NCBI GenBank assembly: GCA_963924565.1
Contig: OZ004614.1
Span: 18,414,001 to 18,478,000, forward strand
DNA length: 64,000 nt
Reading direction: 5' to 3'
From: Ascidiella aspersa
Taxonomy: Eukaryota
Shown: positions 4,251-64,000 of the stretch, one piece after another
Layout of the letters: each line of letters begins with the position of its first letter
How positions within the stretch are numbered: position 1 is the stretch's first letter
The notes under the pieces: generated by a model
Told to the model about the DNA's origin: nothing
Seen by the model: only the letters and a program-made list of their open reading frames with translations
Database searches by the model: none
Made by a program: the position numbers and the translations under genes

Positions 4251-4705
4251 TAAGTAAGCTTTTATTTACTTTACCTTGTCTATGACCTTTGACCATCCTA
4301 ACCTTCTTTTCCCTTTATTCAAAGTCTTTGGCTAGTTCTTTTTTGACAGACGACCTGTTTTAACATTTTTGGGTAATGGTTTAGCGCTTATAATTTGAGT
4401 TACCATTAACGCAGGGATATGGGCTTTACACCAATTAAATTGGATTATATAAATAGGCTCATTACGTAGGATGGCAGCTAAAGTTTATTTGCAATTTGCA
4501 TTGTCAGTAATTGATATCTGCCTTGTTCATAATCTTACACCACGCCTCTTTCGCTCTAAGTCGCCGCAGTTGTAAGTATTTACCATTGAGTTATGAGCTC
4601 GTTTTAATGTTGTCATATCGGTCGTACTGTGCAGATTTAAAACCGCATTTGACCAAAACTATATTTACGGCTCTTTTTCTTAAGTTGAAGGTGAAACTTT
4701 ACTTA

Positions 4706-4812
4706 AGTAAGTAAGTAATGTTTATTTTTCCGTTAGCGCTTAAATTAAAATGCACTAGTAAGCTATGACAAAAAACAAATTCACGCGCGATACGGCCGGA
4801 GCAGCGGGTCCA
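4706..4812 (-). repeat. Second copy of the LINE 3' tail (AATAAA + TTAC repeats)
   Basis: AAGTAAGTAAGTAATG.TTATTTTTCCGTTAGCGCTTAAA and TACGGCCGGAGCAGCG are shared with 1722-1790. Confidence 0.6.
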
Positions 4813-34400: not shown

Positions 34401-34470
34401 TTGATCGAAACGGCGTGTTCAGCTTCCATCTTCGACTTCAAAAGAACGTTTTAAAGTTGCGGGGTTACCA
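31428..34470 (-). mobile_element. Ty3/Gypsy LTR retrotransposon (CsRn1-like), frameshifted gag-pol; 5' LTR missing
   Basis: gag: TKFYYIVFALD...LGDKKPS and CHCC motif CFHRRFG..ARQCSQPC. RT/RNase H ORF 32334-33260 (YLDDILV, DASQSAVGA, YTDHKPL). Integrase 31861-32337 (GLVERFHR). PBS-like TGGTAACCCCG at 34460-34470. Putative 3' LTR 31428-31578. Confidence 0.93.
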
Positions 34471-35686
34471 GTAAAGCGATTATGTTTGTTTATTCGCGTC
34501 ATTAGGGGAAGCGAATAAAGGAGGAAAAGGACGAGAAAAACGGGCGAGGCGTACATTACACAACACGGAAATAATAAATAAATAAAAAGGAAAAGAAAGG
34601 TAATGTGTAATAACAATGGAAAGCGTTGGACAGGATGGGCGGCGGGGGTTAATATCTATAAATATTCGGAGGAAACGTTGCATTTTACGGGAAGGAAAGC
34701 GAGCAGAAAGTGGGCGGTAGAGAGCCCATGCGAATATTACATAAAGTTGAGGTACAATTGAAGAGGGTGCGAGAAAAGGAGTGGATATTTGAAAACCGTG
34801 CTAGGTCTCAACAGGGTATGCAGTGTGACGAGGTTACTAGGGAAAGGACAAAAAAAGGCGCGACATGGCAATATATTGACCACTAGGAGAGCTAGGAAGC
34901 GTTGTGGTGGAAGACCAATAAGTAGACAAAATTAACGAAGGCTTGCGTGGCGATGCTTACTATAAAACGAGGAGGAGTCATATTGAAACAAGCAAACAAG
35001 GTCTTAAATGGCGTAGGTAAATAAATAAACAAAGAAATAAATGGCGATGGATGCTGAAAAGAATAAAAAGAACAATAAGTAGAGAAAGGGTGTTGGTCAG
35101 CCAATGAGAGCTCAAAGTTTGTAGTGTCTAGGGTTCGGGGAGGGGGGTATGTCCCCTGGTTCTTCTCCCTGGATTGGCTATTAAGGAGAGCTTGTGCTAG
35201 TTCTCTCTCATTGGTGGCAGTATGGGTTTTCGCCTCGGACGAGAGCATTTTAGGGGTAATTCTGAATTTTATTGGGGCGCACAATGGAGCTTGGTCTTTT
35301 GATGATTGTTTTGCCTGTTATTTGGGCCTGTTCCGAAAAGAACTTGGACTATTTTTGGGTTGGATATTTAGATTTTATTTTGCCTATTATTTCACCTATC
35401 CCATTAGGACTGGGTGAAAGTGAGGAGGATTTTTGGTAAGGTGGTGCCGGAAAATTTAGTTGTTCTAGGTATTGGAGGGTTAATTTTTTGGGGGGCAGCT
35501 TTGCCTTGTTGGTTTTGGGTGGTCTAAGTGGGTTTTTTATTTGAAATTTACGGGGTTTTTGTTTCCTTATTGTGCGGTTTAAAGTTTTATTGGGTGGGAG
35601 ATTGGCGAGTTGAAATTGTCGTTTATGTTTTAATTTTATTGGGGGTGGGGTGGCAAAGCTGCCGCAGGACGCAACTCACAACGTAC

Positions 35687-38600
35687 CTATTGGGATAGCA
35701 AATTCCTGAGGTCTTGTATTGTTGACATGAATGTTGTGTCTAGCCTATTATGTTCAACGTTGAGTCGTTGTGTAATTCCTCTTTTTATTGCAGATATAAT
35801 TGCTGAAACTGGCCGAATTTGTTTATGTTCGAACTTGATTTTATTTCTGGTTCTCCAGATGTGGTGCCGGGTGAGTGTATTGATGTATACTAGGTGCTCT
35901 GTGTATATTTCAAGGTGGCTGGGTATGTTGAGTCGTGTAGTAATCTCATCAGTGAGCGTGGTGGCAGTGTTGGTGAGTCGGTTGATTAGCTGTTCAATGT
36001 ATTTCCACACTGGCGCCAGTGTGGAACATGTTGAAAAAATGTGGTGCGTGGTTTCTGGCCTACTTCCGCAGAAGAGGCACAAGGTAGCCGGGTCGAGAGA
36101 TATGGAAGAGAATTTGGTGGATACGGGTAAGAGGTCAAATAAAGTTCTATAATTAAACGTTTTTGCCGCGTTAGAGAGGATTGGGTGGTGGACGTTATTC
36201 CAGAGGGTTGTCGGAGCAATGGGACCATCCCTCTGGCTAACGTCGGGGTTGGGGGAGACTAGGCCTAGATAGAGGGTACGGATTGAGCCATGAACGAGTT
36301 GGTCGAAGGAGAAAGAATATTTTTTAACCAGGTTTAAGGCGTGTTTGTAGAAGGGGTTGGGGATAACGGCGTGGGGGTGTGAGTTTCTTAGTCGTAACTT
36401 AAAAAGGTTTGAAAGTTGGAGTCCAATATTATACTCGATCATGGCCAATCCGGGTGTAGTTGGGGTATCGTTTTCTCTATGGCGGCAATAGAAGAAGATA
36501 GACTGCATAAAGAAAAGATCGCAGTAGACGGGAATGTTTGCTACCTTGTATCCCCCCCTATCGAACGGAAGGGCCAGTTGTTGTATTGGAAGGTGCAATC
36601 TACTGTTCCCAGTTATAAAATTACCGACCGCGTCATCTACCCGTTGCCGCAACGACTCGGGGAGTGGATAAACCGTGGCTGTATAGGATATTAATGGCAG
36701 GAATTTAGCCTTCGTGACGATGGATTTGGCGTTCCACGTCATTGCGAACCGGGCATGGCGTTTTATTGTGTCTGTGAGGGTTTTAAAATGTTCGGCCCAG
36801 TTCGCCGTGACGCTCGGCCCAGACCCGATCACGGTCCCGAGTAAACTCAGGTGCGATCGAGTCCATCCGATGGGGGGGAGGGGGCCCTGAGCGCTTCGGG
36901 TGTAGAGGCCTTTGGTCTTGGAGTAGTTCAGAGTTAAACCCGAAGCGTCTCTGAAACGATCTAATTTTTGGAACGCCAATGTCACGGAGTATGGGTGGCA
37001 AAGGGTCAGGGTTGTGTCATCGGCATAACTGGGACACTTGATGCAGTGTCGACCAGGTATGCCGATGCCGCTGACCGACGAGTCGGCCTGAAGGGCCAGT
37101 GAGAAGGGCGTTGCGGCAATCAGGAAGAGGAACAAGCTAAGGGGATCGCCTTGTCTTATTCCCCTTCCAATTGCAAATGGCGCAGTCGGGAACCCGTTAA
37201 CAAGAACAGTAGATTGTGCGTCTGTGTTTATGCTGCGTATTACTCTGATAAAGTGTTCAGGAAAACCCATTTTAGTCATAACACAATAAAGCCATGCGTG
37301 GTCGACCGAGTCGAAGGCCTTCTTGAAGTCTAGGGAGATAAAGTAAGCATCCGTACCCCTCCCCAGCGCGTCATAGTAGAGATCCCTAAGGAGGGTGGTG
37401 GCATCCGATATACGCCGTTTTGGCGCTGCGAATTGGTGGGGGTGGAGGACTCGCTCCAGGATCGCTTTTATCCGAGTGGCCAGGATTTTGGTGTAAATTT
37501 TTAGGTCGGTGTTGAGCAGGGAGATAGGGCGATAGTTTCCTAGGTCCGAGGGATCTTGTTTTTTGTGTAAAAGGGTGAGTGTGCCGAGTTTCATGTCCTC
37601 GGGGATTTGGCCTTGTTCGTGGATTCGGTTCATGACGTCAGTCAGATCCCGACCAATCAGCTCCCAGTACAGAGAATAAAACTCTGTGCTGATGCCGTCC
37701 GGACCGGGGGACTTTCCCGACGCCATTTGCCGAATTGCGTTATGTACTTCCTGGCCCGTGATTGGTCGGGTCAGGGTGTCGTCTAAGGGGTCTAAGCTAG
37801 TAGGGACGTGCGCTAGAAAACTCCGCTGCGCCTCGGCGTCTGTGGGTTGAGTGCGGTACAAGTCCGTGTAAAAGCTGTGGGCGATGTTAAGCATCTCTAC
37901 GTTGTTACTGGTTTTGTTTTGGCTTGTGCCTTGTTTAAGCTCGAGTATGGTTGTGTTCCTACGCTGTTCGGCAAACCGAGCAAAGAAAGCCTTTGTGCCC
38001 CGGTCTCCCCAGTCAAAACCTTGGGCTTGGGATTTTAGAAGTCTGGCGCGGGCAGATTGCCGCTGAAGGGTGCAAAGTTGACGTTTAAGGGTTAGGTAGG
38101 GGGTAAGTAGGGTTGGGTTGTTTGCCAGCGGCCCCCAGAGTGCCGTGACGCCTTCCTGCAGTTGCACATGGTGTTTGTTTCGCTCTACGGCTAGCAATTT
38201 GGAGTGCTTTATGTTAAGGTCTTTTATGCGTTGTTTTATGTGCAGCCACCAGGAGGTTTTATCGTCGAAAAGGGCGGGGTGGAGCGTGCTCCACATTTCC
38301 CACCGCTTTTCGAGTTCCTCCAGGAAAGCTGCGTTGGCGTAGGTGCTAGTATTGTTTTTCCAGTACCCCTTACCCCTGCGGGATCCGGGGACTGTCTCGA
38401 TTTGTAAGGTTACCATGTCGTGGTCCGACTGGCAATTAGGCGGCGTCCCATTTTCCGAAATTGGTTTTATGAGTGCGCTGATATAGAAACGATCTAAGCG
38501 GGACTGTGTGTTGTTAAGTCTACGTGTATAGAATGGCCTATCGCCGTACAACTGCCGAAAGGAGTCTGACAACTGGAGATCGCGGCAAACGTCAATGAGA

Positions 38601-39071
38601 CCTGCCAGGAGCTCGGGATAAGTAGAGGGGGGGGTAAACGATCAAGGCGCGAGTTCTCCACCCCGTTAAAATCGCCCGCCAAAATGGTTGGGTGCCTCGA
38701 ATGCACGTGCACGTACAGCGACCCGAAGAAAGCTCTGCGAGCAGCACTTCCTTCGGTTCGCTGCGGGGCATACACGTTTACGACGTGTATTGTTGAGCCG
38801 AAAAGCTGTATATCGACTGCCAGGACCCGCCCGTCTCCGTCGCCACTACGCGCGCCGAAGCTGAGTGATGGATGCCTAAGCAATATCGCGACCCCGTTCC
38901 TCGCGAGAGGCCTCGACAAGGCCGACCAAAACAGGGCTTTATTGGGTTGCCATTCAACACCCCACGCCATTTCCTCCGCAGGAGAACTGTGCGTCTCCTG
39001 ATGGCCGATCGTTTGGCCGCATCTTTCATTCCCCCGACGTTGAATGTGGTTACTTTAAGGTAAGTAGCCAT
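35687..39071 (-). CDS. Family A ORF2: APE endonuclease, reverse transcriptase and C-terminal zinc knuckle (frameshifts in the endonuclease region)
   Basis: MATYLKVTTFNVGG, ILAGDFN, SRLDRFY, SDHD, GKSPGPDG, YRPISLLNTD, SLDFKKAFDSVDH, GIRQGDPLS, YADD, CLFC..ETTHHIFSTC. ORFs 38778-39071, 38494-38970 and 35687-38572. Confidence 0.95.
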
Positions 39072-39128
39072 GACTACTATTTAGTTTAGGTTAAGCTATC
39101 TATCCTAGGTACATCCTAAGTTGCGTCC

Positions 39129-40499
39129 TTATGCCATGCTTTGCGAAAGCGGCGTGGCCTTCTTCTCGCATTGGGGGCAGACGCTTATGTCTCCCGTGTT
39201 TGAAAAAAAATGGCAGCTGCCGACGCAGCTTTGTAGCCACTGGGGGCAGCCGGTACACTTAATGGCTTTGCCCGCTAGAGGGACTTGGACGGCCACGCCG
39301 CAATCGCAGGTTTCGGTTAGAGTTTCTAGGCGCTGTGCCTTATGGTTAGTTGTACTCTCGTCCGAGCCTGAATAAAACCGCTTAACTGCATCATTTATGT
39401 TGTCGTCGTCCTGATGCTGTTCCCCTCCTGTTGTGTCCGTTTCCGATGTGAATGTGGTTGTAGTTTCGCTTGAGCTGGATTCCGTGGTGCCCGATGTGCC
39501 CGCGTTCACCGCTAAGGCGTCGTTTTCAGTGGTGCCCGCGTTCACCGCTAAGGCGCTGTTTTCTGTTTTGCCCGCGTTCACCGCTAGGGCGCTGTTGCTT
39601 GCTGTGCCCGCGTTCACTGCTAAGGCGTTGTTGTCATTGGACCCCTGTTCACCAGGTGCCGCTTTTTCTTTCCCGCCTTCCTCGCTCTCGCTCGGTGGTT
39701 GGTCGGTTGGCGGGGGGGAGGTTCTCTCAGGCACCTGTTGATGGGAAGGCGGCGGAGGAGGAGGAAGAGGGGGAGTAGGAGGAGGAGGAGGGATGTTGGG
39801 GAGAGGAAGGCCTGGCTTGGGCCATTGTTTCCCGTTGCGTCTGTTGACGGTGGTGTAGCCATCCATGTTGGATGGCCCTGGTTTGGGGGTTGACGTGTGA
39901 TCCGGCGTTGTCAGCTCCTGAGATTTCAGGACCTGGCAGTCGTCCTTGTAGTGGCCGAACTTTCGGCATATAAAGCATTGGGGGGGTTGGCCCGTGTACT
40001 TTGTCGGGAAGGCCAGCCCCTCGACCCGGATCGTTTGCGGGATGGGGCTTCTTTTGAGGTCCGCAGTTCTCATTGTATAAGTGGTGCGGCCGTCGTTTAA
40101 ATGGTTGCGGTCCTTCTGCCGCTTGTAAACTTTGACTTCTCCATGCCGGAAATTCAGTAGGGAGACTATTTCCTGGATCGGAAATCTTGGCGGGACGTGT
40201 GAGACTTCGACCGTAGTAAACTCGCTTTCATACCGCTTGACGGACTGGACCGCTGATTGGCCGGTTAGGCGTATGACCAGGTCATCGGCGGTTTTTTCGT
40301 CGACGCAGGTGAAGTCAGTGAAGCCTCCTCTGCGTTCGACGATGCCTTCCAGGCGGTTGTAGTTGAAGTGCGCCTTCTTCAGCAGTTCGTATATGAAGTT
40401 GCGGGATCTTTTGTCCGGCAGCTTTGCCACTACTTCTGTTTTTCTTTCGAAGATTGTTCGGCTTCTGGCGACAACTTTGTTCCAGGCTGGCTGGGACAT
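39129..40499 (-). CDS. Family A ORF1 (RRM-like region, CCHC knuckle, low-complexity linker, Cys-rich C-terminus)
   Basis: Intact 456 aa ORF upstream of ORF2; CFICRKFGHYKDDC; C-terminal CDC..CTGC..CVGSC..CPQC. Confidence 0.9.
   Translation of the reverse strand: MSQPAWNKVVARSRTIFERKTEVVAKLPDKRSRNFIYELLKKAHFNYNRLEGIVERRGGFTDFTCVDEKTADDLVIRLTGQSAVQSVKRYESEFTTVEVSHVPPRFPIQEIVSLLNFRHGEVKVYKRQKDRNHLNDGRTTYTMRTADLKRSPIPQTIRVEGLAFPTKYTGQPPQCFICRKFGHYKDDCQVLKSQELTTPDHTSTPKPGPSNMDGYTTVNRRNGKQWPKPGLPLPNIPPPPPTPPLPPPPPPSHQQVPERTSPPPTDQPPSESEEGGKEKAAPGEQGSNDNNALAVNAGTASNSALAVNAGKTENSALAVNAGTTENDALAVNAGTSGTTESSSSETTTTFTSETDTTGGEQHQDDDNINDAVKRFYSGSDESTTNHKAQRLETLTETCDCGVAVQVPLAGKAIKCTGCPQWLQSCVGSCHFFSNTGDISVCPQCEKKATPLSQSMA
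39497..39632. repeat. 36-bp coding tandem repeat x4 (ALAVNAG)
   Basis: TGCCCGCGTTCAC(C/T)GCTA(A/G)GGCG with period 36. Confidence 0.95.
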
Positions 40500-40964
40500 T
40501 GCGGGCTGGGTTGAGAAGGTGTGCAGTGGGGTGACTGCAGGTTAAAGGGGAGGATATTTGGTGGCGTCTTATTGGACGGTTGTCCTCAACGCTTAGGTCG
40601 GGTAGTTCTAGCGGACCTTAAAAAAGGCCAGGAAAAGGGTTTTTTCCTTTTGCGCTTGGTAGGATCTGAGGTTGGGGTTTTTTGGGTTGGCCCACTTACC
40701 GTTCCGGCGGCAAAACTCTTGAAAAACCGAGTAATGCGTTTTTTTCCGGCAACGGGGTGGGACGGGTTGCTGGTACTAAGCCTGTTCAGGGAAATCCCTA
40801 CGCTCCAAACCTTCGGGGCTAGGCTGGAGCTTATTCTCTTTTCTTCCTGAATCAGGTAAGTCTGGCAGGATATTGCGCAGATCTTGCTGTTGTGGACGGT
40901 TTGTCGGGTCCTTTCGGAGCTCTGATCTGAAAGACTGACTGCTGACAGCTCTTCGGATATTGTG

Positions 40965-41160
40965 AAGGATAGAGTTCTTCACTTTGTAATAACTACGCCT
41001 CGCCTATCGAAAAACCGCCCGACGGTTGAAAAGCGCGCGCAGTAACACCCAATCGTTTTTTTTCGCGCACTCTCGCACTGCTCCATTGGCGAAAGCGTCG
41101 AACCGTCATTTGCATCTCTTCCGATCTATAAGCGACGAGAGTGGAAAAACACGCCACACT
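40965..41160. promoter_or_regulatory. Orphan H2A/H2B-type divergent histone promoter
   Basis: CCAAT 41049-41053, E2F-type TTTCGCGC 41061-41068, ATTGG 41085-41089, octamer ATTTGCAT 41108-41115 and TATAAG 41127-41132. Octamer followed by TATA is the classic H2B arrangement. It lies between head-to-head elements A1 and B1. Confidence 0.75.
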
Positions 41161-42582
41161 CTTCGTCGTCGAAAGCTACGAAGAACCGATTTCACTCGAG
41201 AAACAAGATACTCGAACATACAAGTGTATGACCCAAATATGTTGTCCAAGCCATGGAGCATGGTTGTTTCCCAGGGGAATCCCCACACCGCCGCAGGGAA
41301 TCCTTCCCTCGTCGCAGCGCCCCACAGGAGGGAGGTCTTCTCCCGTCGTACGGAGGTCGTTGCTAAAATTCCTAGCAAGAGGTCAAGGAACTTCATCTAC
41401 AGCCTCCTAAAACTGGTGTCTTTCGACACCAACAATCTGGAGGGGATAGTCGAACGAAAAGGAGGCTACACCGACTTTACGTGTAAAACTGAACAGCAAG
41501 CCGAAGAGTTGGTCTTCAAGCTGAAGAGCAGACCCGAGGTCGATCTCGCAAGGCGCTATGAGAGCGAATATACCAGCGTGGAAATCTCGCACGTGCCACC
41601 TCGCTTCAACATCGGTACGCTTATGGCGTACATCCAGAAGAACCACGGCACTGCCCTAGAGGCCAGAAAGCTAAAGGACGCCATAGCCGGTCTCCCAGAC
41701 GGGAGAATAAAAGCAGAGGTGCTCACCGAGCACCTGAAACAAAATCCCATCCCGGCAACCATCCGATGCGAAGGACTCACGTTTCCAGTGAGATACTACC
41801 AGCAACCACAGCAGTGCTTTCACTGCAGAGCCTTCGGCCACATCCGGGCAAATTGCCCGACACGCCAGCCCCCATCGCAGCGCACAGCAGACGAGGAACC
41901 CGACCCAGCGACAAACTCAGAGAAGACCCCGGAGAACATGCCAACAGACATCTCGTCGGAGAACGGTGAGAAGACGGAGAAAGAAAGAAGGACAGAGGCG
42001 GCAACATCATCCAGCATAACGGCGGCCACAGCAGTAACAGCAACAGCAGCATCCGGCAACTCAGCGGCAAACGATATCCAACAGCCAGAAGACGACTGAA
42101 CCACCAAACGACAAAGAAGCAGCGGCAACACCCCTCCCGAGAACGACCAAAAGCGTCCAAAAGCAGAAGATGACAGGCTATGCCTGCCGCAGTCCGAGGG
42201 GCCTTCTGTGGACGGGCCAGTGCGTAAATGCCGTGAATGCCTCGAGTGCGACTGCCAAGCTCTCGTGGATTTTCCAGAGCCGGGCATACCGACTGTATGC
42301 GACGCCTGCAAGAGGATCTTCCGCTGGTGCGATGAATGCAATTATGCATACGTGTGGCTTCCCAAAAGCCAGAAGTCTTGCCCCACTTGCGGGACTTTCA
42401 TACCGGAAAGCCTCTCACAAACCCTCCCGGGTTGACAGAGGCGGTCTGGAGCAGGAAATTACATAATCATTGTTTGATTTCAAAGTTTTTATTTGCATAT
42501 TTGTTTTTCGCCTCGCCCGTTTTATTTTCGTTCTTTTTTCTTATTCGTTTTCTTTAATTGATGCGAATAAACCAACATACTC
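41161..42582 (+). mobile_element. Family B ORF1-only non-autonomous Tx1 derivative (copy B1)
   Basis: ORF1 is homologous to family A ORF1 and is followed within ~150 bp by a 3' end (CGCCTCGCCCGTTTT...TTATTCG...GCGAATAAA) homologous to that of family A. No ORF2. Confidence 0.85.
41239..42435 (+). pseudogene. Family B ORF1 with one nonsense codon (42097-42099)
   Basis: MLSKPW...CFHCRAFGHIRANC. The TGA corresponds to TGC in copy B3, and the frame continues into Cys-rich ORF 42208-42435. Confidence 0.85.
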
Positions 42583-42872
42583 AGAAACAAGACACTCGAA
42601 CATACAAGACCCAAATATGATGTCCAAGCCATGGAACATGGCCGTTTCCCAGGGGAATCCCCACACCGCCGCAGGGAATCCTTCCCTCGTCGCAGCGCCC
42701 CGCAGGAGGGAGGAGGTCTTCTCCCGTCGTACGGAGGTCGTTGCTAAACTTCCTAGCAAGAGATCAAGGAACTACATCTACAGCCTCCTAAAACTGGTGT
42801 CTTTCGACACCAACAACCTGGAGGGGATAGTCGAAAGAAAAGGAGGCTACACGGACTTTGCTGAAGAGAGCT
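42583..42872 (+). mobile_element. Tandem second family B copy (B2), 5' part only
   Basis: Near-identical to 41199-41480; deletion junction into family C ORF2. Confidence 0.9.
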
Positions 42873-42875
42873 GAA

Positions 42876-45800
42876 GCTCCGGGTGTAGGTTGTTTCAATT
42901 CTTGTCCCTACGGAGGGTCTTCCTCCGGGGGGGTCGCCATTTTATTTCCTGCGTCCCCACTTTTACCCCTTTAGACATTTTCTCAGATCTCACCGGCAAA
43001 ATTATTTCCTACAATATTAATACTAATATATATATGCCCCGTCCGGTAAAACCAACCACTTAGCCAACAACAAATTTTTCGACAACCTTTACCCTTACGC
43101 AACCTCCCCCCACCCCACCATCCTGGCTGGAGACTTTAATTGCGTTCTCCAGCCCCACCTTGATAAATACCCCCCAGAACCATCCCGTCACCCCCAACAA
43201 ACCCTTAATTACCCTATTAGATACCCTTAACCCTTACGCCAAAACTTTCTCCCGCCGCACCCATAACTCCCAATCCCGCCTTGACCGTTTTTATGTTACC
43301 CCAATATTACCCCCGTTAATCACACCTTCACCCCAACCCCCTTTTCAGACCACGACCTAGTCACCCTCACCCTTGACATCCCCATTTCTCCCCCAGAGGC
43401 TACGGCCTCTGGAAAAACGACATCCGCACCCCCTTACCCACCCCGACTTCCAAATACCACTTTACATTAAATTAAACCGGCTTAAATCAATACAACAGGA
43501 CTATGACCCGCTTAATTTTTGGATTCTAGTCAAAACCCAAATCCCAGAAACAACATTCGACCCTTGCCAAATTACGGGAACAAATGAGTCCCCTTAAAAC
43601 CTTTGCTACTTTCCAAAAATTAAAACGTGAACTCAACCCCAATACTACCTGGAAAAATCAAAACAAGACCTTCTAAAGGCAAAGGTTGATAATATGGAAA
43701 ATAAAAATATATCTAATAAAGCCCTTTATACTCTCGTGTGTTGCCCCAAAAACAAAAAACCCATATCAACGAACTACTGGATGATTTCCATCTCTCCCAT
43801 ACCACCCCCGCCGAACTCTGCCACCTAGCGGAGAAATATTATAAAAACCTATACGACTGCCCCCCAACCCCCCAGACCCAAATTGACCCCTTCCTCCACA
43901 ACCATACCCCAATCCCCGACCAACTCCACCAATCACTCACCCAACCATTTACCCGCCATTAAATTAGCAACATTATTAAAACCTTCCCCACCGGTAAAAC
44001 CCCCGGGCCCGATGGCCTCAGCATTGAGTTTTTTACACTGAATGCTGGGAGAGCTCATCGGGCCCTATCCCACCCCCGCCCTCAATTACGCCTACCTAGC
44101 CCCAACCCTCCCCGCAGACTTTACCCACGGAGCCATAACCCTCATACCGAAAACCCCCGCTGCCAACTATCGCCCCATTTCTCTTCTAAACACAGATCTC
44201 AAAATTCTAAATCAACGCATTAAGCCGCAATTAAAACATTTTCTCTCTCCCCTTCAACACGCACAACCCGGAAAAAATACTTCAACCGCATCAACCCTCA
44301 TCCGCGACCTCTACCACCATGCCACCCAAAACACCCCCCCTCATATTTCATATCCCTTGATTTCAAAAAAGCCTTCGATTCGATCACCCACCCATATCTC
44401 ACCCACATCCTCACCACCCGCAACTTCCCCCAACCCTTCATAAATTACACCCAAACCAGCCAAACCTCAGCCACCTCCGCCATTTTAATAAATGGCTTCC
44501 CCACTAACCCCGTGGCGATCAGAAGAGGTGTGAGGCAAGGCGACCCGCTGAGTCTCACCCTCTTCCTGATCGCCCTTGACCCCCTCCTCAAAAACATCCA
44601 GGACAACCCCTCCATTTCTCCCTCCCCCGCCCCTACCCGCACCCCACCCAAACTCGTCGCTTACGCGGATGATGTTACCCTCACCCTTGCCCACCCCCAC
44701 TCCCTCCCCCCGCTATTCGACAACCGTACCGGCTTGACCCTCAACCCCCTCAAAACGAAGGAATCCCTCCCCCCTCCTCTCCACGACCTCCCCCAAATCG
44801 ACTGGAACCCTCTATCAATATCCCCCCTAAATATACCCATCGGAGACCCCACCCAAATTACTCAAGCTTGGCAATCTTCCATACACAAACTTTAAAAACA
44901 AGATCTCACAAATTACACATCCGTTTCCTAACCTTTGACTCCAAATCCATTCTCTCTAAGACCATCTCCTTCTCCCCAATTTTACTCAACTGGCATCCGT
45001 TTACCCAGCCCGAAACCTTATAAAAAATAAAATTAATTCCAAATTATAACAGTATTTCATCGGCCGCAACCCCCCCATTCCCCTCGACACCCTGGCGGCC
45101 AGTCGCCCCCACGGGGGCTACTCGGTCGCCAACATCCCCCTCTACCTCGACCTCTTCCTTACCCGCATAATAGGCCCCTACCTCAACCACCGCACCCTTG
45201 ATTCATTCCCCCGCTGATACCCAAAATCAAATTTTGGAATACAACCTTCTATCAAAGAAATACGATCTTAGAATAAAAAATAATCTGCCACACACCATGT
45301 TTCCCTCACCATATTATCAACAAATTTGGACTTTAATAACTCAATATAATCCGACATTGACCAAACTCACGTGCCCCAAAATAAAACCCCTCTACCTCCG
45401 CCTCACCATCCCCCAGCAATACTCTAACCCCAACCCCAGCTACACCCCACCCCAAAGCCTAATACTTTTCTTTAACAACTCTATTCGATCCCGGTGCCAA
45501 ATTGAACAGGCCAGACCCTCTTCTCCCCATATTGACCTGTTTGTAACCCTCCTTTAATGACCAACTGACCCCTCCTCTCCCACCAAACTAAATTGTCCAA
45601 ACCCAATGTCAACCCAAAACCTTAGGTATCCGTTCCTACCCCCTTAAATTTTTAAATCTCTTGACTTGTTATTATTGTTTATGCCTGCCTTGTTCTTTTT
45701 TATTTCTCTCGCTTTTAACACTCAGTTATCTTTCGAAATGGGAAACGTATCCCTGAACCATTTGCGCCCCGTAGGACGCCATTTTTGTTTTTTCACCGCC

Positions 45801-46161: not shown

Positions 46162-46174
46162 AAGGCTGTCAATG

Positions 46175-49100
46175 TTCGACTTTTTAACTCGACAAAGCAA
46201 GAAACATGTCAAGACGCGGTTAATAGCAAACGAAAGCTTTTAGAATTGTTTTTCACTGGTAAATGAGAAGGAGAAGAGGCTGCAAGCTTCAGCAGAGGCT
46301 GAACTTTGTCTATAGTGATACAGTTTTCTAAGTGACTATTTTGCTGCTTTTTCCCTGACAAGCAAGCTTTTTCGACGAAAAATTGGATTTATTTCATGAC
46401 CTTATTTACCTGGATTATTTCGACCAGTATCGGAGTACATACGTGTACAGACTACTCACCGAAAGGTTACTTTTGTTATTATATTTCACGTGTATCACGT
46501 GTGTTAACTTCACAACTCTACTAGCGGAGCCGCCATTTTATTAAAATGGCGACCGCGGGCCCAAGCTGGGCCAATATTTGTGCGAAAGATTTTGATGTTA
46601 CCAAGTTTAACGTGTCTCGCAAGGGCGAGTTAGAAATCCACTTTAACCCTCCGCAATCAGGACCTCAGGTGTACGAAGTATTAGAATCGGTTGGCTTCAA
46701 TTATAAACGCTTTCTAGAAAGCTGTATACAAAAACCTAATGGTAAAAGTGTCTTGTGCTGCCATACAGATGAGGAAGCTAGAGACCTTGCATGCAAACTT
46801 GACAAGTTACCGTTTGTCAAATACGCCGAACCTTTCGAAGAGTCAATCATCAAAGTCAAACTTAGCTAGGATTTCTTTTCTGCCAAATTTGCCAAATGCA
46901 CCGGCCACCGAGAAATTGTAGATTTGCGTCAGGTTCATGCAGGAAAGGTGCACCTTGACTTAGACCGGAAAGAGCTTGAAAAAAAGCCTATACCCAAAGA
47001 AATTAAAATGGGGGCCCTCATATGATTGAAGTTTACTATCAAGAGCAACCAGAATGCTGTCGATATTGTCGCAAGCCAGGGCACACCCTCGAAGAGTGTG
47101 ATAAATTAAAAAAGAAAAAGGCAGACAACGAAGATAGAGAGAGAATAAACACCGAAGAGAAAGAAAGGAAGAAAGAAGAGGAAGAAAGAAAAAGGCAAAA
47201 TATGTTGTTAAACATCGCTGACATGCTGAACAAAGATAGAGAAAGGTCTTTAGTTGCAACATCCACAACCCTTCGCGACCCGTCAAAAATTGGAAAAATT
47301 GCCCCCGCAGATTTCTCCTCCCCAGGGGGCCGAAAGCCAAATAGTAGCTCTTCGAGCACATTAAGCTCCACGGAGACAGAGGAGGCTGAGGCAGAAAGCC
47401 TAGGAACAGAAATCGACGGCACTGAAAACCCTGAGCCAAGTCAACCAGACCATAGTGACGCACCCCCATAAGATTCAGAACTCGCCAACAGAAAACGCCC
47501 CTTTGAATTCTCAAGTTTTTCAAATAGAAAAGCACCCTCTCATAGAATGCTCACTATGCAACGGGCTGGGCAGCCATGCTCACCAGTGTCCAAACGAACA
47601 AGGCGACGACCCCCCCAAAGGAAATGCCACAGTTTCATATTGTTGATTCGCCAGCAACCAAGACCTCCCCCCCACTAATGTAAATACCCAGCTCAAATGG
47701 AGTCACACAAGTTTTAATGTAAATGGTCTTAGTGGCCACGCCAAGCGTAATGCAGTTTTTACGTACCTTAAAAGCTTACAGTTTGATATAGTGTTGTTGC
47801 AGGAGACCCACTCGACACCTCAGGTTGAGTCAACCTGGGCTGCCGAGTGGGCTCTGGGTGTAGGTTTTTTCGAATTCTTGTCCCTCCAGAGGGTCTTCCT
47901 CTGGGGGAGTCGCCATTTTATTTCCTGCGTTCCCACTTTACCCCTTTAGATATTTTCTCAGATCTCACCGGTAAAATTATATCCTGTAATATTAATACTC
48001 TAACCCATACCATTCATTTAACCAATATATAATCAATTACTTGGCCAACAACAATTTTTTACGTAACCTCCCCCCACCCACCCCACCATCCTGACTGGAG
48101 ACTTTAACTGCGTTCTCCAGCCCCACCTTGATAAATACCCCCCACAACCATCCCGTCACCCCAACAAATCTTTAATGACCCTGTTAGATACCCTTACCCT
48201 CACCGACACCTTTCGCACCCTTAACCCTTACACCAAAACCTTTTCCCGCCGCACCCATAACTCCCAATCCCGCCTTGACCGTTTTTATTCTACCCCTAAT
48301 ATCACCCCGGTTAACCACACCTTCACGACCTAGTTACCTTGACATACCCATCTCACCCCCCAGAGGCTATGGCCTCTGGAAAAGTGACACCCGTGCCCTT
48401 ACCCACCCCGACTTCCAAATTCCACTTAACATTAAATTAAACCGGCTAAAATCATTACAACAAGACTATAACCCACTTGATTTTTGGATCTTAGTTAAAA
48501 CCCAAGTCGCAAACCTCCATAAAATCATAAGTAAAAAACTTAACATAGAGGGAAATAGCCCAGAAACATTCGGACTCTTGCCAAATTACGGGAACAAATG
48601 AATCCCCTTAACTACCCCCAAACTTTTGCTACTTTCCAAAAATTAAAACATGAACTCAATAAATATTACTTGGAAAAATCAAAACAAGACCTTCTAAAGG
48701 CAAAGGTTGATAATATGGAAAATAAAAATGTATCTAATAAATCCCTCTATACCCGCGTCTTACCGCAAAGCAAACAAACCCACATTAAAGAATTACTGGA
48801 TGACTACCACCTCCCCCACACCACCCCCGCCGAACTCTGCCACCTAGCGGAGAAATACTACAAAAACCTATACGACTGCCCCCCAACCCCCAGACCCAAA
48901 TTGACCCCTTCCTCCACAACCACACCCCCATCCCCGACCAGTCACCCGCCACGAAATTAGAAACATTATTAAAACCTTCCCCACCGGTAAAACCCCCGGG
49001 CCCGATGGCCTCAGCATTGAGTTTTACACTGAATGCTGGGAGCTCATCGGGCCCTATCTCACCCCCGCCCTCAATTACGCCTACCTAGCCCCAACCCTCC

Positions 49101-51499
49101 CCGCAGACTTTACCCACGGAGCCATAACCCTCATACCGAAAACCCCCGCTGCCAACACCCTTGCCAACTATCGCCCCATTTCTCTTCTAAACACAGATCT
49201 CAAAATCCTTAACAAAATTCTAAATCAACGTATCAAGCCGCAATTAAAACATTTTCTCTCTCCCCTTCAACACGCACAACCCGGAAAAAATACTTCAACT
49301 GCATCAATCCTCATCCGACCCAAAATACCCCCCCTCATATTTCATATCCCTTGATTTCAAAAAAGCCTTCGATTCGTTCACCCACCAAAACGTCACCCAC
49401 ATCCTCACCACCCGCAACTTCCCCCCCCCACCCTTCATAAATTACACCTAAACCACCAAAACCTCAGCCACCTCCGCCATTTTATTAAATGGATTCCCCA
49501 CTGACCCCGTGGTGAGACAAGGCGACCCGCTGAGTCTCACCCTCTTCCTGATCTCCCTCGACCCCCTCCTGAAAAACATCCAGGATCTCCCCCGCCCCCG
49601 ACCCGCACCCCACCCAAACTCGTCGCTTACGCGGACGATGTCACCCTAACCCTTGCCCACCCCCACTCCCTCCCCCCGCTTTTTGACACCCTGGCCAAAT
49701 TTGCAACTGTATCCGGCTTGACCCTCAACCCCTTCAAAACGAAGGCTACCTACACCAAATCCCTCCCCCTCCCCTCCACGGCCTCCCCCAAATCGACTGG
49801 AACCCTCTAGCAATATCCCCCCTTAATAACCCCATCGGAGACCCCACCCAAATCACCCAAGCTTGGCAATCTTCCTACACAAACTTTAAAAACAAGATCT
49901 CACAAATCACACATCCGTTTCTAACCTTTGACTCCAAATCCATTCTCTCTAAGACCATTCTCCTCCCCAATTTTACGCAACTGGCATCCGTCTACCCAGC
50001 CCCAAACCTTTTAAAAAATAAAATTAATTCTAAATTATTGCAGTATTTCATTGGCCCCCGCAACCCCCCCATTCCCCTTGACACCCTGGCGGCCAGTCGC
50101 CCCCACGGGGGCTACTCGGTCGCCAACATCCCCCTCTACCTTGACCTCTTCCTCACCCGCATCATTGGCCCCTACTTAACCCACCGCATTCTAGATTCCC
50201 CAGCCGACACCCAAAACCAAATAATTGAATATAATCTCGGAATCCAATTATCCAATAAATATGAACTAAGAATTAAAAATAACCTTCCGCACACAATGTT
50301 TCCCTCACCATATTATCAACAAATTTGGACTTTAATAACTCAATATAATCCGACATTGACTGAAACCTGTAAAATCCCACACCACCCCCAATATACTCTC
50401 CCTAGACCCCAACTGCCCCCTTTGCCTTTCCCGATACGAATCGGACGCCCATTTACTTCACAACTGCACCCAAATCCAACCCCTCCTCACCCATGTTAAA
50501 AACCTTTATTTTAATTTTACATCCTAGCCCACTACCTTTTTTGATTACCATTCCCATATTTATTTTGTCCACCCGCCCCGCTCCCCACTCCCCAACAACG
50601 ACCTCATCACCCTCCTAAATACAATCCTACACCACACCATCTGGAAAACCCGAATTAGCAAAATAATCACCCCTGACCCGCAACCCACCCCACCCCAAAG
50701 CCTAATACTATTTTTTAATAATTCTATTCGATCCCGGTGCCAAATTGAACAGGCCAGACCCTCTTCTCCCCACATTGACCTGTTCGTAAAGCTAACCTCC
50801 CTCCTTTAATTACCAACTGACCCCTCCTCTCCCACCAAACTAAATTGCCCCTGCCCCAGGTCAACCCAAAACCTTAGGCAATTCCTCCAACCTCCCTTCT
50901 AACAATATCTCTCTTTTTATTTTGTTATTGTTTTTGCTTTTGCCTTTTGCCTTTTTATTACTCTCTTGTTTCTGCCCTTAAAAACCTTAGTTAAATGTAG
51001 AGAATTTCGACTCTAAACCCACCGGGTCTCCCAATGCAGCGAGACGCCATTTTGTTTTTAAATTGCCATTTTCGTTCTTTACTGTGTCAATTTTTGAACA
51101 CTTCTATTGTACCGGCTAACCCTATTAAGGCTGTCACACATTCCAACAAGCTCCCTCTGAAACCAATACTAACCTGGTGCTACATTCTCAATTCTTAATA
51201 TGCATATCCTCAAACGAGGGGAGCTACAACATGCAATTCCACACCATTTCTCTATCTAACTTTAGACCTGCTCACGCATACTCCTCTCGCTAGGGGGAGT
51301 GAAGAGTAAACCCGTGCTTCATTAAAAACTCACCCCGAAATTTTCTTTTTCATCGCTCCGTTCGTTTGTTTCCCCGCACCCGCTTAAAATAAATTTACAA
51401 AAATGGGCAATGATGAGCCCAAACCAAAGGGAGGGTTAGCACATTGTTAACCAACCACCCCTGAGGTACCTGAGCCCTCAAGAAAAAAAAAAAAAAAAA
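46175..51499 (+). mobile_element. Family D (C-related) Tx1 element, full length but disrupted, with poly(A) tail and TSD
   Basis: ORF1 46546-~47646 (CRYCRKPGHTLEEC), ORF2 ~47697-50815, poly(A) 51483-51501. AAGGCTGTCAATG occurs at both 46162-46174 and 51500-51512. Confidence 0.93.
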
Positions 51500-51512
51500 A
51501 AGGCTGTCAATG

Positions 51513-55507
<3,995 letters not shown>

Positions 55508-55617
55508 TAGCGAGTTTTTGGGTCGTCGCTCGAAGGTTTGTTATTTGCCAAGTAAAATCCTGCTCACTAACGAACTAGGGGGGTACATTTCAAGGTAGAG
55601 GTAGGTACCAAATGGTT

Positions 55618-55652
55618 CTCTTTCAAACTGTAGGGTGGCTCTGAAAAGAGCC
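55618..55652 (-). terminator. Histone mRNA 3' stem-loop and downstream purine-rich element (HDE)
   Basis: Minus strand AAAC-GGCTCTTTTCAGAGCC-ACCC (stem-loop 55637-55652), followed by AAAGAG. Confidence 0.97.
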
Positions 55653-55679
55653 GTTTTTTGGTGTGAAGCAGTTGTTGCT

Positions 55680-56057
55680 TTAAACTTTCTTTGAGGTCTT
55701 CTTGGGAAGAAGCACGGCCTGGATATTGGGCAGCACACCTCCCTGAGCGATGGTTACACCGCCGAGCAGCTTGTTGAGCTCCTTGTCGTTGCGAATGGCC
55801 AACTGCAAGTGACGGGGGATGATTCTGGTCTTCTTGTTGTCACGGGCTGCGTTGCCAGCCAACTCGAGCACTTCGGCGCTCAGGTACTCGAGCACGGCTG
55901 CCAGGTACACGGGGGCACCGGCACCAACACGCTCCGAGTAGTTGCCGTTGCGCATCAGTCTGTGCACACGACCGACTGGGAACTGCAGGCCAGCTCTCGA
56001 GGAACGGCTCTTCGGCTTTGGCTTTGCTTTACCACCACCTTTACCACGTCCAGACAT
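55680..56057 (-). CDS. H2A: Histone H2A, replication-dependent (intact ORF, promoter displaced, possibly pseudogenising)
   Basis: 125 aa, MSGRGKG...[12 protein letters not shown]...[20 protein letters not shown]; intronless; stem-loop downstream. Confidence 0.97.
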
Positions 56058-56062
56058 TTTTT

Positions 56063-59000
56063 GCGATTATGTTTGTTTATTCGCGTCATTAGGGGAGGCG
56101 AATAAAGGAGGAAAAGGACGAAAAACGGGCGAGGCGTACATTACACAACACGAGAATAAAAAAAAAGAAAAAGAAAGGTAATGGATAATAACAATGGAAG
56201 CGTTGGACAAAATGGGCGGCGGGGGTTAATATGTATGTATATTCGGAGAAAACGTTGCATTTTACGGAAAGGAAGGCGAGCAGAAAGTGGGCGGTAGAGA
56301 GCCCAAGCGAATGTTCCATAAAGTTGAGGTACAATTAAAGAGGGCGCGAGAAAAGGAATGGATATTTGAAAACAGTGCTAGGTCTCAACAAGGTATGCAG
56401 TGTGACGAGGTTACGGGGGAAAGGACAAGAAAAAGCTGCCGAAGGACGCAACTCACAACGTACCTATTAGGATAGCAAATTCCTGAGGTCTTGTATTGTT
56501 GACATGAATGTTGTGTCTAGCCTATTATGTTCAACGTTGAGTCGTTGTGTAATTCCTCTTTTTATTGCAGATATAATTGCTGGAACTGGCCGAATTTGTT
56601 TATGTTCGAACTTGATTTTATTTCTGGTTCTCCAGATGTGGTGCCGGGTGAGTGTATTGATGATGTATACTAGGTGCTCTGTGTATATTTCAATGGTGGC
56701 TGGGTATGTTGAGTCGTGTAGTAATCTCATCGGTAAGCGTGGTGGCAGTGTTGGTGAGTCGGTTGATTAGCTGTTCAATGTATTTCCACACTGGCGCCAG
56801 TGTGGAACATGTTGAAAAAATGTGGTGCGTGGTTTCTGGCCTACTTCCGCAGAAGAGGCACAAGGTAGCCGGGTCGAGAGATATGGAAGAGAATTTGGTG
56901 GATACGGGTAAGAGGTCAAATAAAGTTTATAAATTAAAATCTATAATTAAAGTTTTTGTCGCGTTAGAGAGGATTGGGTGGTGGGCGATATTCCAGAGGG
57001 TTGTCGGAGCAATGGGACCATCCCTCTGGCTAACGTCGGGGTTGGGGGAGACTAGGCCTAGATAGAGGGTACGGATTGAGCCATGAACGAGTTGGTCGAA
57101 GGAGAAAGAATATTTGTTAACCAAGTTTAAGGCGTGTTTGTAGAAGGGGCTGGGGGTAACGGCGTGGGGGGTGTGAGTTTCTTAGTCGTAACTTAAAAAG
57201 GTTTGAAAGTTGGAGTCCAATATTATACTCGATCATGGCCAATCCGGGTGTAGTTGGGGTATCGTTTTCTCTATGGCGGCAATAGAAGAAGATAGACTGC
57301 ATAAAGAAAAGATCGCAGTAGACGGGAATGTTTGCTACCTTGTATCCCCCCCTGTCGAACGGAAGGGCCAGTTGTTGTATTGGAAGGTGCAATCTACTGT
57401 TCCCAGTTATGAAGTTACCGACCGCGTCATCTACCCGTTGCCGCAACGACTCGGGGAGTGGATAAACCGTGGCTGTATAGGATATTAATGGCATGTTCGG
57501 CCCAGTTCGCCGTGACGCTCGGCCCAGACCCGATCACGGTCCCGAGTAAACTCAGGTGCGATCGAGTCCATCCGATGGGGGGGAGGGGGCCCTGAGCGCT
57601 TCGGGTGTAGAGGCCTTTGGTCTTGGAGTAATTCAGAGTTAAACCCGAAGCGTCTCTAAAACGATCGAATTTTTGGAACGCCAATGTCACGGAGTATGGG
57701 TGGCAAAGGGTCAGGGTTGTGTCATCGGCATAACTGGGACACTTGATGCAGTGTCGACCAGGTATGCCGATGCCGCTGACCGACGAGTCGGCCTGAAGGG
57801 CCAGTGAGAAAGGCGTTGCGGCAATCAGGAAGAGGAACAAGCTAAGGATCACCTTGTCTTATTCCCCTTCCAATTGCAAATGGCGCAGTCGGGAACCCGT
57901 TAACGAGAACAGTAGATTGTGCGTCTGTGTTTATGCTGCGTATTAATCTGATAAAGTGTTCAGGAAAACCCATTTTAGTCATAACACAATAAAGCCATGC
58001 GTGGTCAACCGAGTCGAAGGCCTTCTTGAAGTCTAGGGAGATAAAGGAAGCATCCGTACCCCTCCCCAGCGCGTCATAGTAGAGATCCCTAAGGAGGGTG
58101 GTGGCATCCGATATACGCCGTTTTGGCGCTGCGAATTGGTGGGGATGGAGGAATCGCTCTAGGATCGCTTTTATCCTTTGGTGTAAATTTTTAGGTCGGT
58201 GTTGAGCAGGGAGATAGGGCGATAGTTTCCTAGGTCCGAGGGATCTTGTTTTTTGTGTAAAAGGGTGAGTGTGCCGAGTTTCATGTCCTCGGGGATTTGG
58301 CCTTGTTCGTGGATTCGGTTCATGACGTCAGTCAGATCCCGACCAATCAGCTCCCAGTACAGAGAATAAAAAACTCTGTGCTGATGCCGTCCGGGCCGGG
58401 GGACTTTCCCGACGCCATTTGCCGAATTGCGTTATGTACTTCCTGGCCCGTGATTGGTCGGGTCAGGGTGTCTGTCGTCTAAGGGGTCTAAGCTAGTAGG
58501 GACGTGCGCTAGAAAACTCCGCTGCGCCCCGGCGTTTGTGGGTTGAGTGCGGTACAAGTCCGTGTAAAAGCTGTGGGCGATGTTAAGCATCTCTACGTTG
58601 TTACTGGTTTTGTTTTGGCTTGTGCCTTGTTTAAGCTCGAGTATGGTTGTGTTCTTACGCTGTTCGGCAAACCGAGCAAAGAATGCCTTTGTGCCCCGGT
58701 CTCCCCAGTCAAAACCTTGGGCTTGGGATTTTAGAAGTTTGGCGCGGGCAGATTGCCGCTGAAGGGTGCAAAGTTGACGTTTAAGGGTTATGTAGGGGGT
58801 AAGTAGGGGGTTGGGTTGTTTGCCAGCGACCCCCAGAGTGCCGTGACGCCTTCCTGCAGTTGTACTTGGCGTTTGTTTCGCTCTACGGCTAGCAATTTGG
58901 AGTGCTTTATGTTAAGGTCTTTTATGCGTTGTTTTATATGCAGCCACCAGGAGGTTTTATCATCGAAAAGGGCGGGGTGGAGCGTGCTCCACATTTCCCA

Positions 59001-59247
59001 CCGCTTTTCGAGTTCCTCCCGGAAAGCTGCGTTGGCGTAGGTGCTAGTATTGTTTTTCCAGTACCCCTTACCCCTGCGGGATCCGGGGACTGTCTCGATT
59101 TGTAAGGTTACCATATCGTGGTCCGACTGGCAATTGGGCGTCGCATTTTCCGAAATTGGTTTTATGAGTGCCGTGATATAGAAACGATCTAAGCGGGACT
59201 GTGTGTTGTTAAGTCTACGTGTATAGAATGGCCTATCGCCGTACAAC
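56063..59247 (-). mobile_element. Family A copy A2 (3' two-thirds, frameshifted), 3' end abutting the H2A start codon
   Basis: Near-identical to 34476-34850 plus 35656-38553; ends GCGAATAAACAAACATAATCGC-AAAAA-ATGTCTGGACGT. Confidence 0.95.
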
Positions 59248-60387
59248 TCGACACCAACAACCTGGAGGGGATAGTCGAAAGAAAAGGAGGCTACACGGAC
59301 TTTACGTGCAAAACTGAACAGCAAGCTGAAGAGCAGACCCGAAGTCGATCTCGCAAGGCGCTATGAGAGCGAATACACCAGCGTGGAAATCTTGCACGTG
59401 CCACCTCGCTTCAACATCGGTACGCTTATGGCGTACATCCAGAAGAACCACGGCACTGCTCTAGAGGCCAGAAAGCTAAAGGACGCCATAGCCGGTCTCC
59501 CAGACGGGAGAATAAAAGCAGAGGTGCTCACCGAGCACCTGAAACGAAATCCCATCCCGGCAACCATCCGATGCGAAGGACTCACATTTCCAGTGAGGTA
59601 CTTACAACCACAGCAGTGCTTCCACTGCAGAGCCTTCGGCCACATCCGGGCAAATTGCCCGACACGCCAGCCCCCATCGCAGCGCACATCAGACGAGGAA
59701 CCCGACCCAACGGCAAACCTCGTAAACATGGCAGCGGACACCTCGTCAAAAGGCAAAGAGGAGACGCAACAAGTGAAAAAACCAGAAGTGGCAACATCGC
59801 CAAACGCAACAGCAACAACAATCTCCGGCAACTCAGCGGCAACCGACATCCAACAGCCAGAAGACGACTGCACCACCAAACGACAAAGAAGCAGCGGCAA
59901 CACCCCTCCCGAGAACGACCAAAAGCGACCAAAGGCCGGAGATGACAGGCTATACCTGCCACCGTACGAAAAGCCTTCTATCCACAACGAAGGGTGCGAT
60001 TACCTCATCTGCACCTGCACCGGTATGGTGGAATATCCAGAGGTGGTCGCACCGACCGTATGCGGTGAATGTTTGAAGCTCTACCGCATGTGCAATGGAT
60101 GCAATGAAAAGCACACGAGTGGTACCTCGAGAGCCAGAAGCTTTTCCCCAAGTGCAAGACCCCCATAATAGGCTTCCTCTCGCAAACCCTTCCGGGTTAA
60201 CAGGGGTGTGGCCTAGAGTGGGAATCCCGCAGAAAGTCAAATGCGCTATTTTTTGCCTAATTTGCATAATTTCGTTAATTTCAATTATTTTTTTATATTC
60301 ACATTTGTTTTCGTTTCGCCCGTTTTATTTCGTTCTTTTTCTCCCTTATTCGTTTTCTTTAATTGATGCGAATAAACCAACATACTC
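59248..60387 (+). mobile_element. Family B copy B3 (ORF1-only, 5' deleted)
   Basis: ORF 59383-60168 is homologous to B1; same 3' end GCGAATAAACCAACATACTC; no ORF2. Confidence 0.9.
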
Positions 60388-63400: not shown

Positions 63401-64000
63401 ACCCGCTGAGTCTCACCCTTTTCCTGATCGCCCTCGACCCCTTCCTCTAAAACAGCCAGGACAACCCCTCCATTTCTCCCTCTCCCGCCCCTACCCGCAC
63501 CCCACCCAAACTCGTCGCATACGCGGACGATGTTAGCCCCCACTCCCTCCCCCCGCTATTCGACACCTTGGCCAAATTTACAACCGTATCCGGCTTGACC
63601 CTCAACCCCCTCAAAACGAAGGCTACCTATACCAAATCCCTCCCCATCCCCTCCATGATATACCTCAAATCGATTGGAACCCCCTATCCATATCCCCCTT
63701 AAATATACCCATAGGAGACCCCACAAACTTTAAAAACAAGATCTCACAAATTACACATCCGTTTCTAACCTTTGACTCCAAATCCATTCTCTCTAAGACC
63801 ATCCTTCTCCCCAATTTTACTCAACTGGCATCCGTTAACCCAGCCCCAAACCTTAAAAAAAAAAAAATAAAAAATCCCATTCCCCTCGACACCCTGGCGG
63901 CCAGTCGCCCCCATCCCCCTCTACCTCGACCTCTTCCTTACCCGCATAATAGGCCCCTACCTCAACCAACGCACCCTTGATTCCCCCGCTGATACCCAAA
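60418..64000 (+). mobile_element. Family C/D-type Tx1 element (5' UTR, frameshifted ORF1, degenerate ORF2), running off the window
   Basis: ORF1 ~60650-61838 (KDFDMKRLNV.., CRYCKQSGHVLETC); ORF2 from 61914 (MASHLKIATFIVNG, LQETH, GKTPGPDG, YADD). Preceded by AAGGCTGTTAA. Confidence 0.92.

Follow-up and report, generated by a model that had tools for sequence, protein, structure and literature searches.

When a short stretch of apparent histone promoter is found wedged between two retrotransposons, the question arises whether the elements picked up this promoter, whether they merely landed beside it, and whether they are transcribed from it. This question was raised by a 64,000-nt stretch of the Ascidiella aspersa genome (contig OZ004614.1, here C8, positions 18,414,001 to 18,478,000; hereafter the window, in which position 1 is the first letter). 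The initial annotation had described, at 40965-41160, a bidirectional histone H2A/H2B promoter with two opposed CCAAT boxes, an E2F site and an octamer plus TATA box, captured on both sides by retrotransposons, one reading out to the left on the H2A side and one to the right on the H2B side, and had inferred that both elements may borrow an S-phase or embryonic histone promoter, analogous to the co-transcription of R2 with rDNA. We found the observation itself to be correct, albeit with shifted borders, whereas the interpretation is supported only in part: genomic evidence supports promoter borrowing for the element families, but the direction implied by the word captured is wrong and actual transcription was not examined, since no RNA data were used.

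The H2A-H2B island and its surroundings

A search of the 308.6-Mb genome (75 contigs) with window 40940-41180 gave 11 matches, all on C8 between 18.249 and 18.481 Mb, four of which are spaced 4713, 4596 and 4713 bp apart. These four belong to a tandem histone array about 190 kb upstream of the island on the same contig, of which at least six units (C8:18.249-18.290 Mb, period 4713/4596 bp) are intact. The unit used as native reference (L012) carries H3 (+) at 643-1053, H2A (-) at 1549-1926, H2B (+) at 2202-2561, H1 (+) with its ATG near 3699 and its end at 4304, and H4 (+) at 4674-4985. An Rfam scan placed the histone 3' stem-loop RF00032 downstream of all five genes, at 35-41 bits against a gathering score of 34, so that this is a replication-dependent array. 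The BLASTN comparison that the initial annotation had put forward as its own test came out positive: window 40998-41187 matches the native spacer between the divergent H2A and H2B genes (275 bp in the native unit), at L012:2003-2191, with 95.8% identity over 191 columns (E about 1e-84), which is far beyond chance. The features of the window that matter here are the following.

34480-40994 (-): element A1, a near full-length L1/Tx1-like LINE that lacks the first 53 nt of the family and ends in the non-poly(A) tail AAACAAACATAA; 98.3% and 95.7% identical to the intact copy L013:1157-7650 (L013 is C8:18300000-18309999), with 128 mismatches in 6367 aligned bases
39129-40499 (-): A1 ORF1, 456 aa, open, with one CCHC knuckle, 96% identical to the ORF1 of L013
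35687-39071 (-): A1 ORF2 (endonuclease, reverse transcriptase and zf-RVT by Pfam hits), broken into pieces by a 43-nt deletion near 39000 and a 2-nt insertion near 38634 relative to the 1140-aa ORF2 of L013
40998-41187 (no strand): the island, a partial H2A-H2B intergenic spacer
41049-41089 (no strand): two opposed CCAAT boxes, CCAAT at 41049 (+) and ATTGG at 41085-41089, with TTTCGCGC between them at 41061
41108-41132 (+): H2B octamer ATTTGCAT (41108-41115) and TATA box (41127-41132, TATAA at 41127), with the same spacing as in the native spacer (octamer at L012:2112, TATA at 2131)
41156-41187 (+): first ~31 nt of the H2B mRNA leader, from the inferred start site to the B1 junction
41188-42579 (+): element B1, a 1.38-kb, ORF1-only relative of A, with a head (41188-41223) derived from the H2A leader and an ORF that starts at ATG 41239 and is cut short at 42099; 95.2% identical to L013:7907-9283
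42579-42858 (+): a second, partial B (family positions 7-290), joined head-to-tail to the 3' end of B1
55611-56066 (-): intact H2A gene just downstream of A2, with the last 9 nt of the leader, the CDS at 55683-56057 (tblastn 98.4% over 125 aa) and the 3' stem-loop at 55611-55657 (RF00032, 39.1 bits)
56067-59248 (-): element A2, a 5'-truncated A (family positions about 2556 to the end), whose 3' tail abuts the H2A leader 9 nt before the ATG
59248-60384 (+): element B2, a diverged B (85.6%) that lacks its first 235 nt, is fused directly to the truncated 5' end of A2 and is followed by the H2B ATG

The borders given in the initial annotation are shifted, as 40965-40994 belongs to the 5' UTR of A1 and the island runs 27 nt further, to 41187, but A1 indeed reads out to the left and B1 to the right. 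Both CCAAT boxes are conserved in the native spacer. The proposed E2F site, in contrast, is not a conserved element: TTTCGCGC occurs only in the window copy, whereas the native spacer (L012) and the L013 copy read TTTCCGCGC, which does not match the TTTSSCGC consensus, and the E2F site was hence rejected as a native element. A three-way alignment showed in addition that, compared with L013, about 120 bp are missing at the A1 junction, comprising the first 53 nt of A1 and L012:1936-2002, which hold the H2A leader, the H2A start site and the H2A TATA box (native L012:1994-1999). These are present in the native spacer and in L013. With CCAAT boxes, octamer and the H2B TATA box in place but only the H2B half complete, the window copy by itself does not settle whether it qualifies as a promoter with a TATA box on each side, and A1 cannot use the H2A core promoter at this locus now. 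The H2B start site was inferred from its position about 30 nt after the TATA box, from an Inr-like CCACACT and from a retrocopy on contig C3 whose histone part begins at this point.

The remainder of the window copy is decayed as well. A1 ORF2 and the B1 ORF are broken, although A1 ORF1 is open, and no H2A or H2B coding sequence remains attached. B1 is followed by the partial second B and then by other elements, not by H2B. The idea that the 3' flank of A1 is H2A was rejected, since its tail is followed by TCGC and then by a sequence that looks like an LTR end plus a tRNA primer-binding site (TGGTAACCCCGC..., window 34440-34491, minus strand), and the flank further to the left (about 31.2-34.4 kb) holds LTR-retrotransposon pol domains on the minus strand. 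A full B copy on contig C2 (L029/L053, C2:871860-873254) is inserted, with a 14-bp target-site duplication, at the same point of another copy of that LTR element, which suggests a secondary target for the lineage. A2 still has its intact H2A gene downstream, but between A2 and B2 the island and both element heads were lost in one deletion. Directly beside this H2A gene, at 55258-55608, an H3 coding fragment (aa 26-93) is joined to H3-H2A spacer sequence with internal deletions, as part of a scrambled histone unit.

Elements A and B in the H2A and H2B leaders

An intact version of the arrangement lies 147 kb upstream, at C8:18.301-18.309 Mb in L013. It reads, in order, H3 and H2A with the last 9 nt of the H2A leader; element A on the minus strand, about 6.5 kb, with an open ORF1 (456 aa) and an open ORF2 (1140 aa) carrying Exo_endo_phos (1.1e-20), RVT_1 (4.5e-30) and zf-RVT (4.5e-6); the spacer from L012:1936 to 2191 with both TATA boxes; element B, 1377 bp with one ORF; and the remaining 10 nt of the H2B leader with the first 40 nt of the H2B coding sequence. 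Reading the junctions showed that A lies between L012:1936 and 1935, which is 34 nt after the H2A start site and 9 nt before the ATG, and that B lies after L012:2191, which is about 31 nt after the H2B start site and 10 nt before the ATG. Both are in the sense of the gene they interrupt. The promoter was thus not captured, but the elements inserted into the leaders of resident histone genes, just downstream of the two start sites. Window 34793-42582 and 59248-74000 (the latter counted past the window's end at 64000 into the following 10 kb) are colinear with C8:18.301-18.331 Mb at 95-99% identity, the island and both elements differ from their L013 counterparts by a similar 2-3.6%, and the island shares derived changes with L013 against the native array. 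The window arrangement, A2 included, is therefore a segmental duplicate of one doubly invaded unit and not a fresh pair of insertions.

A and B belong to one lineage. The B ORF is 54% identical over 178 aa to A ORF1, B has no ORF2, and its last ~74 nt are about 80% identical to the 3' end of A, so that B is an ORF1-only relative that probably depends on an A-type ORF2. B has an out-of-frame ATG 11 nt upstream of its ORF1 ATG (window 41228-41241), opening an overlapping frame of about 60 codons that is part of an 89-codon open frame in the L002 copy and to which no significance could be assigned. The closest named relatives of the LINE protein are a pol-like protein of the ascidian Phallusia mammillata (62% identity) and plant LINE-1-like reverse transcriptases, which fits the L1 group only; the reverse transcriptase was not placed in a phylogeny with Tx1 or L1 reference elements and relatives in other species' assemblies were not inspected. 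Four further plus-strand LINE copies in the window (43030-45440, 46555-50349, 51503-54683 and 60837-63987) have strongly C-rich sense strands (GC skew down to -0.6) and encode ORF1 and ORF2 that are 22-50% identical to those of A. They are related families in the same histone-derived block, some of them next to short H4, H3 or H2B start fragments (for example 46174-46219 = L012:4642-4687).

A does not end in poly(A) but in the 12-nt tail AAACAAACATAA (window 34480-34491 and 56067-56078). A 12-bp target-site duplication for A, suggested by the BLAST borders, was rejected because the 12 nt at the 3' junction are the element's own tail, which is kept in off-array copies; the insertion is blunt. 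This tail resembles the 12 nt of H2A leader just upstream of the insertion point (AAACAAATACAA, L012:1936-1947), and why it should mimic the upstream rather than the downstream side of the target is unexplained.

The same junctions recur for diverged subfamilies, always in sense. The A tail is followed by TCGCAAAAAATG of H2A in L013 and at window 56067, and an A-like element of about 87% identity sits at the same H2A-leader position at C8:18.6448 Mb. A further, older A-like / mini-spacer / B-like arrangement lies at C8:18643265-18646406 (L061/L068); its spacer has lost its CCAAT, octamer and H2B TATA part but keeps the H2A TATA box and leader. B, and B variants 82-92% identical to it, lie 4-10 nt before the H2B ATG (copies L002, L009, L010, L028 and L031, and window 60384), and head-to-tail B-B tandems, as expected when the target is regenerated, occur at window 42579 and C8:18315780. 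Few of these events are independent because of the segmental duplication: A1, A2 and the L013 copy trace to one A insertion, so that independent A insertions into H2A number perhaps two or three. Most copies found lie in the C8 histone region, while about eight copies or fragments on C2, C3, C4, C5 and C7 lie in non-histone DNA. Specificity is thus not absolute, and as the genome search scores only the best candidates and is not a full census, these numbers do not tell whether the great majority of copies reside in the target. Two B copies that lack their first 13-18 nt (L051 and L052, C8:18311159 and 18314417) are preceded directly by the long poly(A) tail of another element, from which it appears that a poly(A)-type family inserts into the H2A-leader-derived head of B.

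Histone leader sequence on dispersed copies

The copies outside the array are informative for the question of transcription. An A copy on C4 (L063) is preceded, directly before A position 1, by exactly the 34-nt H2A leader (L012:1969-1936, 100% identity), with unrelated DNA upstream and no histone gene nearby. A B copy on C3 (L055) is preceded by the 31-nt H2B leader (L055:1470-1500 = L012:2161-2191). The B copy on C2, whose 14-bp target-site duplication marks it as a true retrotransposition event, begins with ATTCTTTC, the same H2A base at which the C4 leader begins. Both captured leaders start about 30 nt after a TATA box, inside Inr-like sequence, which is what is expected if the template RNAs started at the histone cap sites. 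Every B copy read at its 5' end begins with H2A leader sequence, although B now lives in H2B, a fossil of an ancestor transcribed from the H2A promoter. Several B-variant tails, including an off-array copy on C7, carry 9 nt of H2B leader from downstream of the insertion site, so that their templates read through into the histone gene. These observations support co-transcription with the histone genes indirectly and, in the absence of RNA reads, leave it undecided.

In contrast to the leader, the upstream promoter part (CCAAT, octamer, TATA) was found only in the C8 histone region. The outcome that the initial annotation had named as fatal to its reading, namely that the segment is the elements' own 5' UTR in copies elsewhere, is thereby ruled out. 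For the same reason a mobile promoter, picked up by the elements as their own 5' UTR and carried to new sites, is refuted for the copies examined and is hardly credible otherwise: the B head and some copies do carry histone-derived sequence at the 5' end, but only the transcribed 31-34 nt of leader travel with the elements, and the C2, C3 and C4 copies lack the promoter part.

Proposed promoter borrowing and its relation to target-specific LINEs

The explanation we favour, with good though not full confidence, is that the island is what remains of the shared promoter of one histone repeat unit, both divergent genes of which were invaded, in sense and inside the 5' leader, by members of one L1/Tx1-like LINE lineage. 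In this view A, the autonomous element, and B need no promoter of their own, as a pol II counterpart of R2 and R1 co-transcription with rDNA, and their RNA would be copied back into histone leaders by target-primed reverse transcription, and occasionally elsewhere, with B presumably mobilised in trans through the shared 3' end. The sequence comparisons demonstrate the homology of the island, the insertion sites to the nucleotide, their orientation, the relationship between A and B, the leader-bearing retrocopies and the restriction of the promoter part to the histone region, whereas actual transcription, its S-phase (or embryonic) timing, sequence-specific cleavage by the endonuclease and the trans-mobilisation of B are inferences.

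Two other explanations should be weighed against this one. It is possible, but in our view unlikely, that histone leaders are only a safe harbour, a multicopy gene that tolerates insertions, and that A and B are transcribed from promoters inside their own 5' UTRs, with leader-bearing copies as rare read-in transcripts. A does have a 568-nt 5' UTR of unknown function between the junction and ORF1 that could hold a promoter, and only three kinds of leader fossil were found. On the other hand, the only off-array A copy with a complete 5' end carries the leader from the cap site, the whole B lineage has fixed an H2A leader as its head, so that leader-initiated RNAs were the successful templates, and B has only about 50 nt between its head and its ATG, which leaves little room for a promoter. 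Much less likely still, and already disfavoured, is a chance pile-up of transposons in a dead part of the histone array, in which unequal crossing-over copied one accidental A-island-B arrangement without any target specificity or functional link to the promoter. The segmental duplication of C8:18.300-18.331 Mb, the shared origin of A1, A2 and the L013 copy, and the packing of the region with related and unrelated elements would fit such a pile-up, but subfamilies that differ by 8-30% sit at the same few nucleotides of the H2B leader, always in sense, the A-like element at C8:18.6448 Mb occupies the same H2A-leader position, tandem B-B junctions occur, and histone leader on off-array copies is not predicted by passive accumulation.

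The R2 and R1 elements of 28S rDNA likewise insert at one nucleotide position of a tandemly repeated, heavily transcribed host gene, in sense orientation. They need no promoter of their own because they are co-transcribed with the target, which for A and B is supported only indirectly. Downstream target sequence in the template helps precise priming, inserted units are inactivated, and copies are spread and lost by unequal crossing-over. Here, however, the target is the 5' leader of replication-dependent histone genes, a pol II protein-coding family, instead of pol I rDNA, and the endonuclease is APE-type, as in R1, and not the restriction-like enzyme of R2. R2 frees its 5' end with a self-cleaving ribozyme, whereas the Rfam scan of the window, L012 and L013 at gathering thresholds matched only histone stem-loops and no known ribozyme family, and the retrocopies keep the host leader, so that the 5' end is not trimmed. 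With the Tx1-clade target-specific LINEs (Tx1, Keno in U2 snRNA genes, Mutsu in 5S rDNA, Kibi and Koshi in microsatellites) the lineage shares an APE-type endonuclease plus reverse transcriptase with a C-terminal zinc-binding motif, an ORF1 with a CCHC knuckle, L1-group affinity and specificity for multicopy sequences. Some crocodilian Tx1 families prefer LTR retrotransposons (PMC4494074), which recalls the two insertions found here at an LTR-end/primer-binding-site sequence. Published target lists name rRNA, snRNA, tRNA and spliced-leader genes, transposons, microsatellites and telomeres (PMC4640811, PMC4494074, PMC3747384) and do not mention histone genes; in these lists target-specific LINEs are described for RNA genes, repeats and other transposons, not for a protein-coding gene family. 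Literature searches and word look-ups in these papers and in PMC10946416 found no LINE reported to target histone genes, Repbase reports not being among the literature covered, and the Ascidiella aspersa genome paper (PMC13746493) mentions neither histones nor non-LTR elements.

B resembles HAL1-type ORF1-only LINE derivatives, and LINE/SINE pairs that share a 3' end, in keeping an ORF1 homologue and the 3' end of its autonomous partner while lacking ORF2, and is therefore expected to be mobilised in trans, but it has its own target (H2B rather than H2A) and its head is a captured host mRNA leader rather than a LINE 5' UTR. The carriage of host sequence from an upstream promoter's start site at the 5' end of new copies also recalls 5' transduction of host exons, for example in the SVA subfamily transcribed from the MAST2 promoter (cited in PMC4494074). 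In SVA this is sporadic, whereas here it follows from a systematic insertion site about 30 nt below the cap site of a gene family.

A broader reading, which we hold to be somewhat more likely than not, is that a lineage of L1/Tx1-like LINEs in an ascidian lives inside replication-dependent histone genes, each family inserting about 30 nt below the cap site of a particular histone gene and using its pol II promoter and capped leader, and possibly its stem-loop 3' end, instead of signals of its own. Its expression would then be tied to S phase, and the families would switch between histone targets while carrying the previous host's leader as a fossil. This would be the first target-specific retrotransposon guild that parasitises a protein-coding gene family. 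The system makes it possible to ask how an APE-type endonuclease acquires a new specificity, whether retrotransposition can be coupled to S phase, and how a histone array copes with invaded units. The leader fossils provide nucleotide-level start sites for H2A and H2B and a readable record of target switching, since an H2A leader sits at the head of an H2B-resident family. Insertion just below the cap site of a histone gene would give the element a strong promoter linked to the cell cycle and to early embryogenesis, a ready-made capped leader and a multicopy target that tolerates loss of single units, which extends the R2/rDNA logic to pol II genes.
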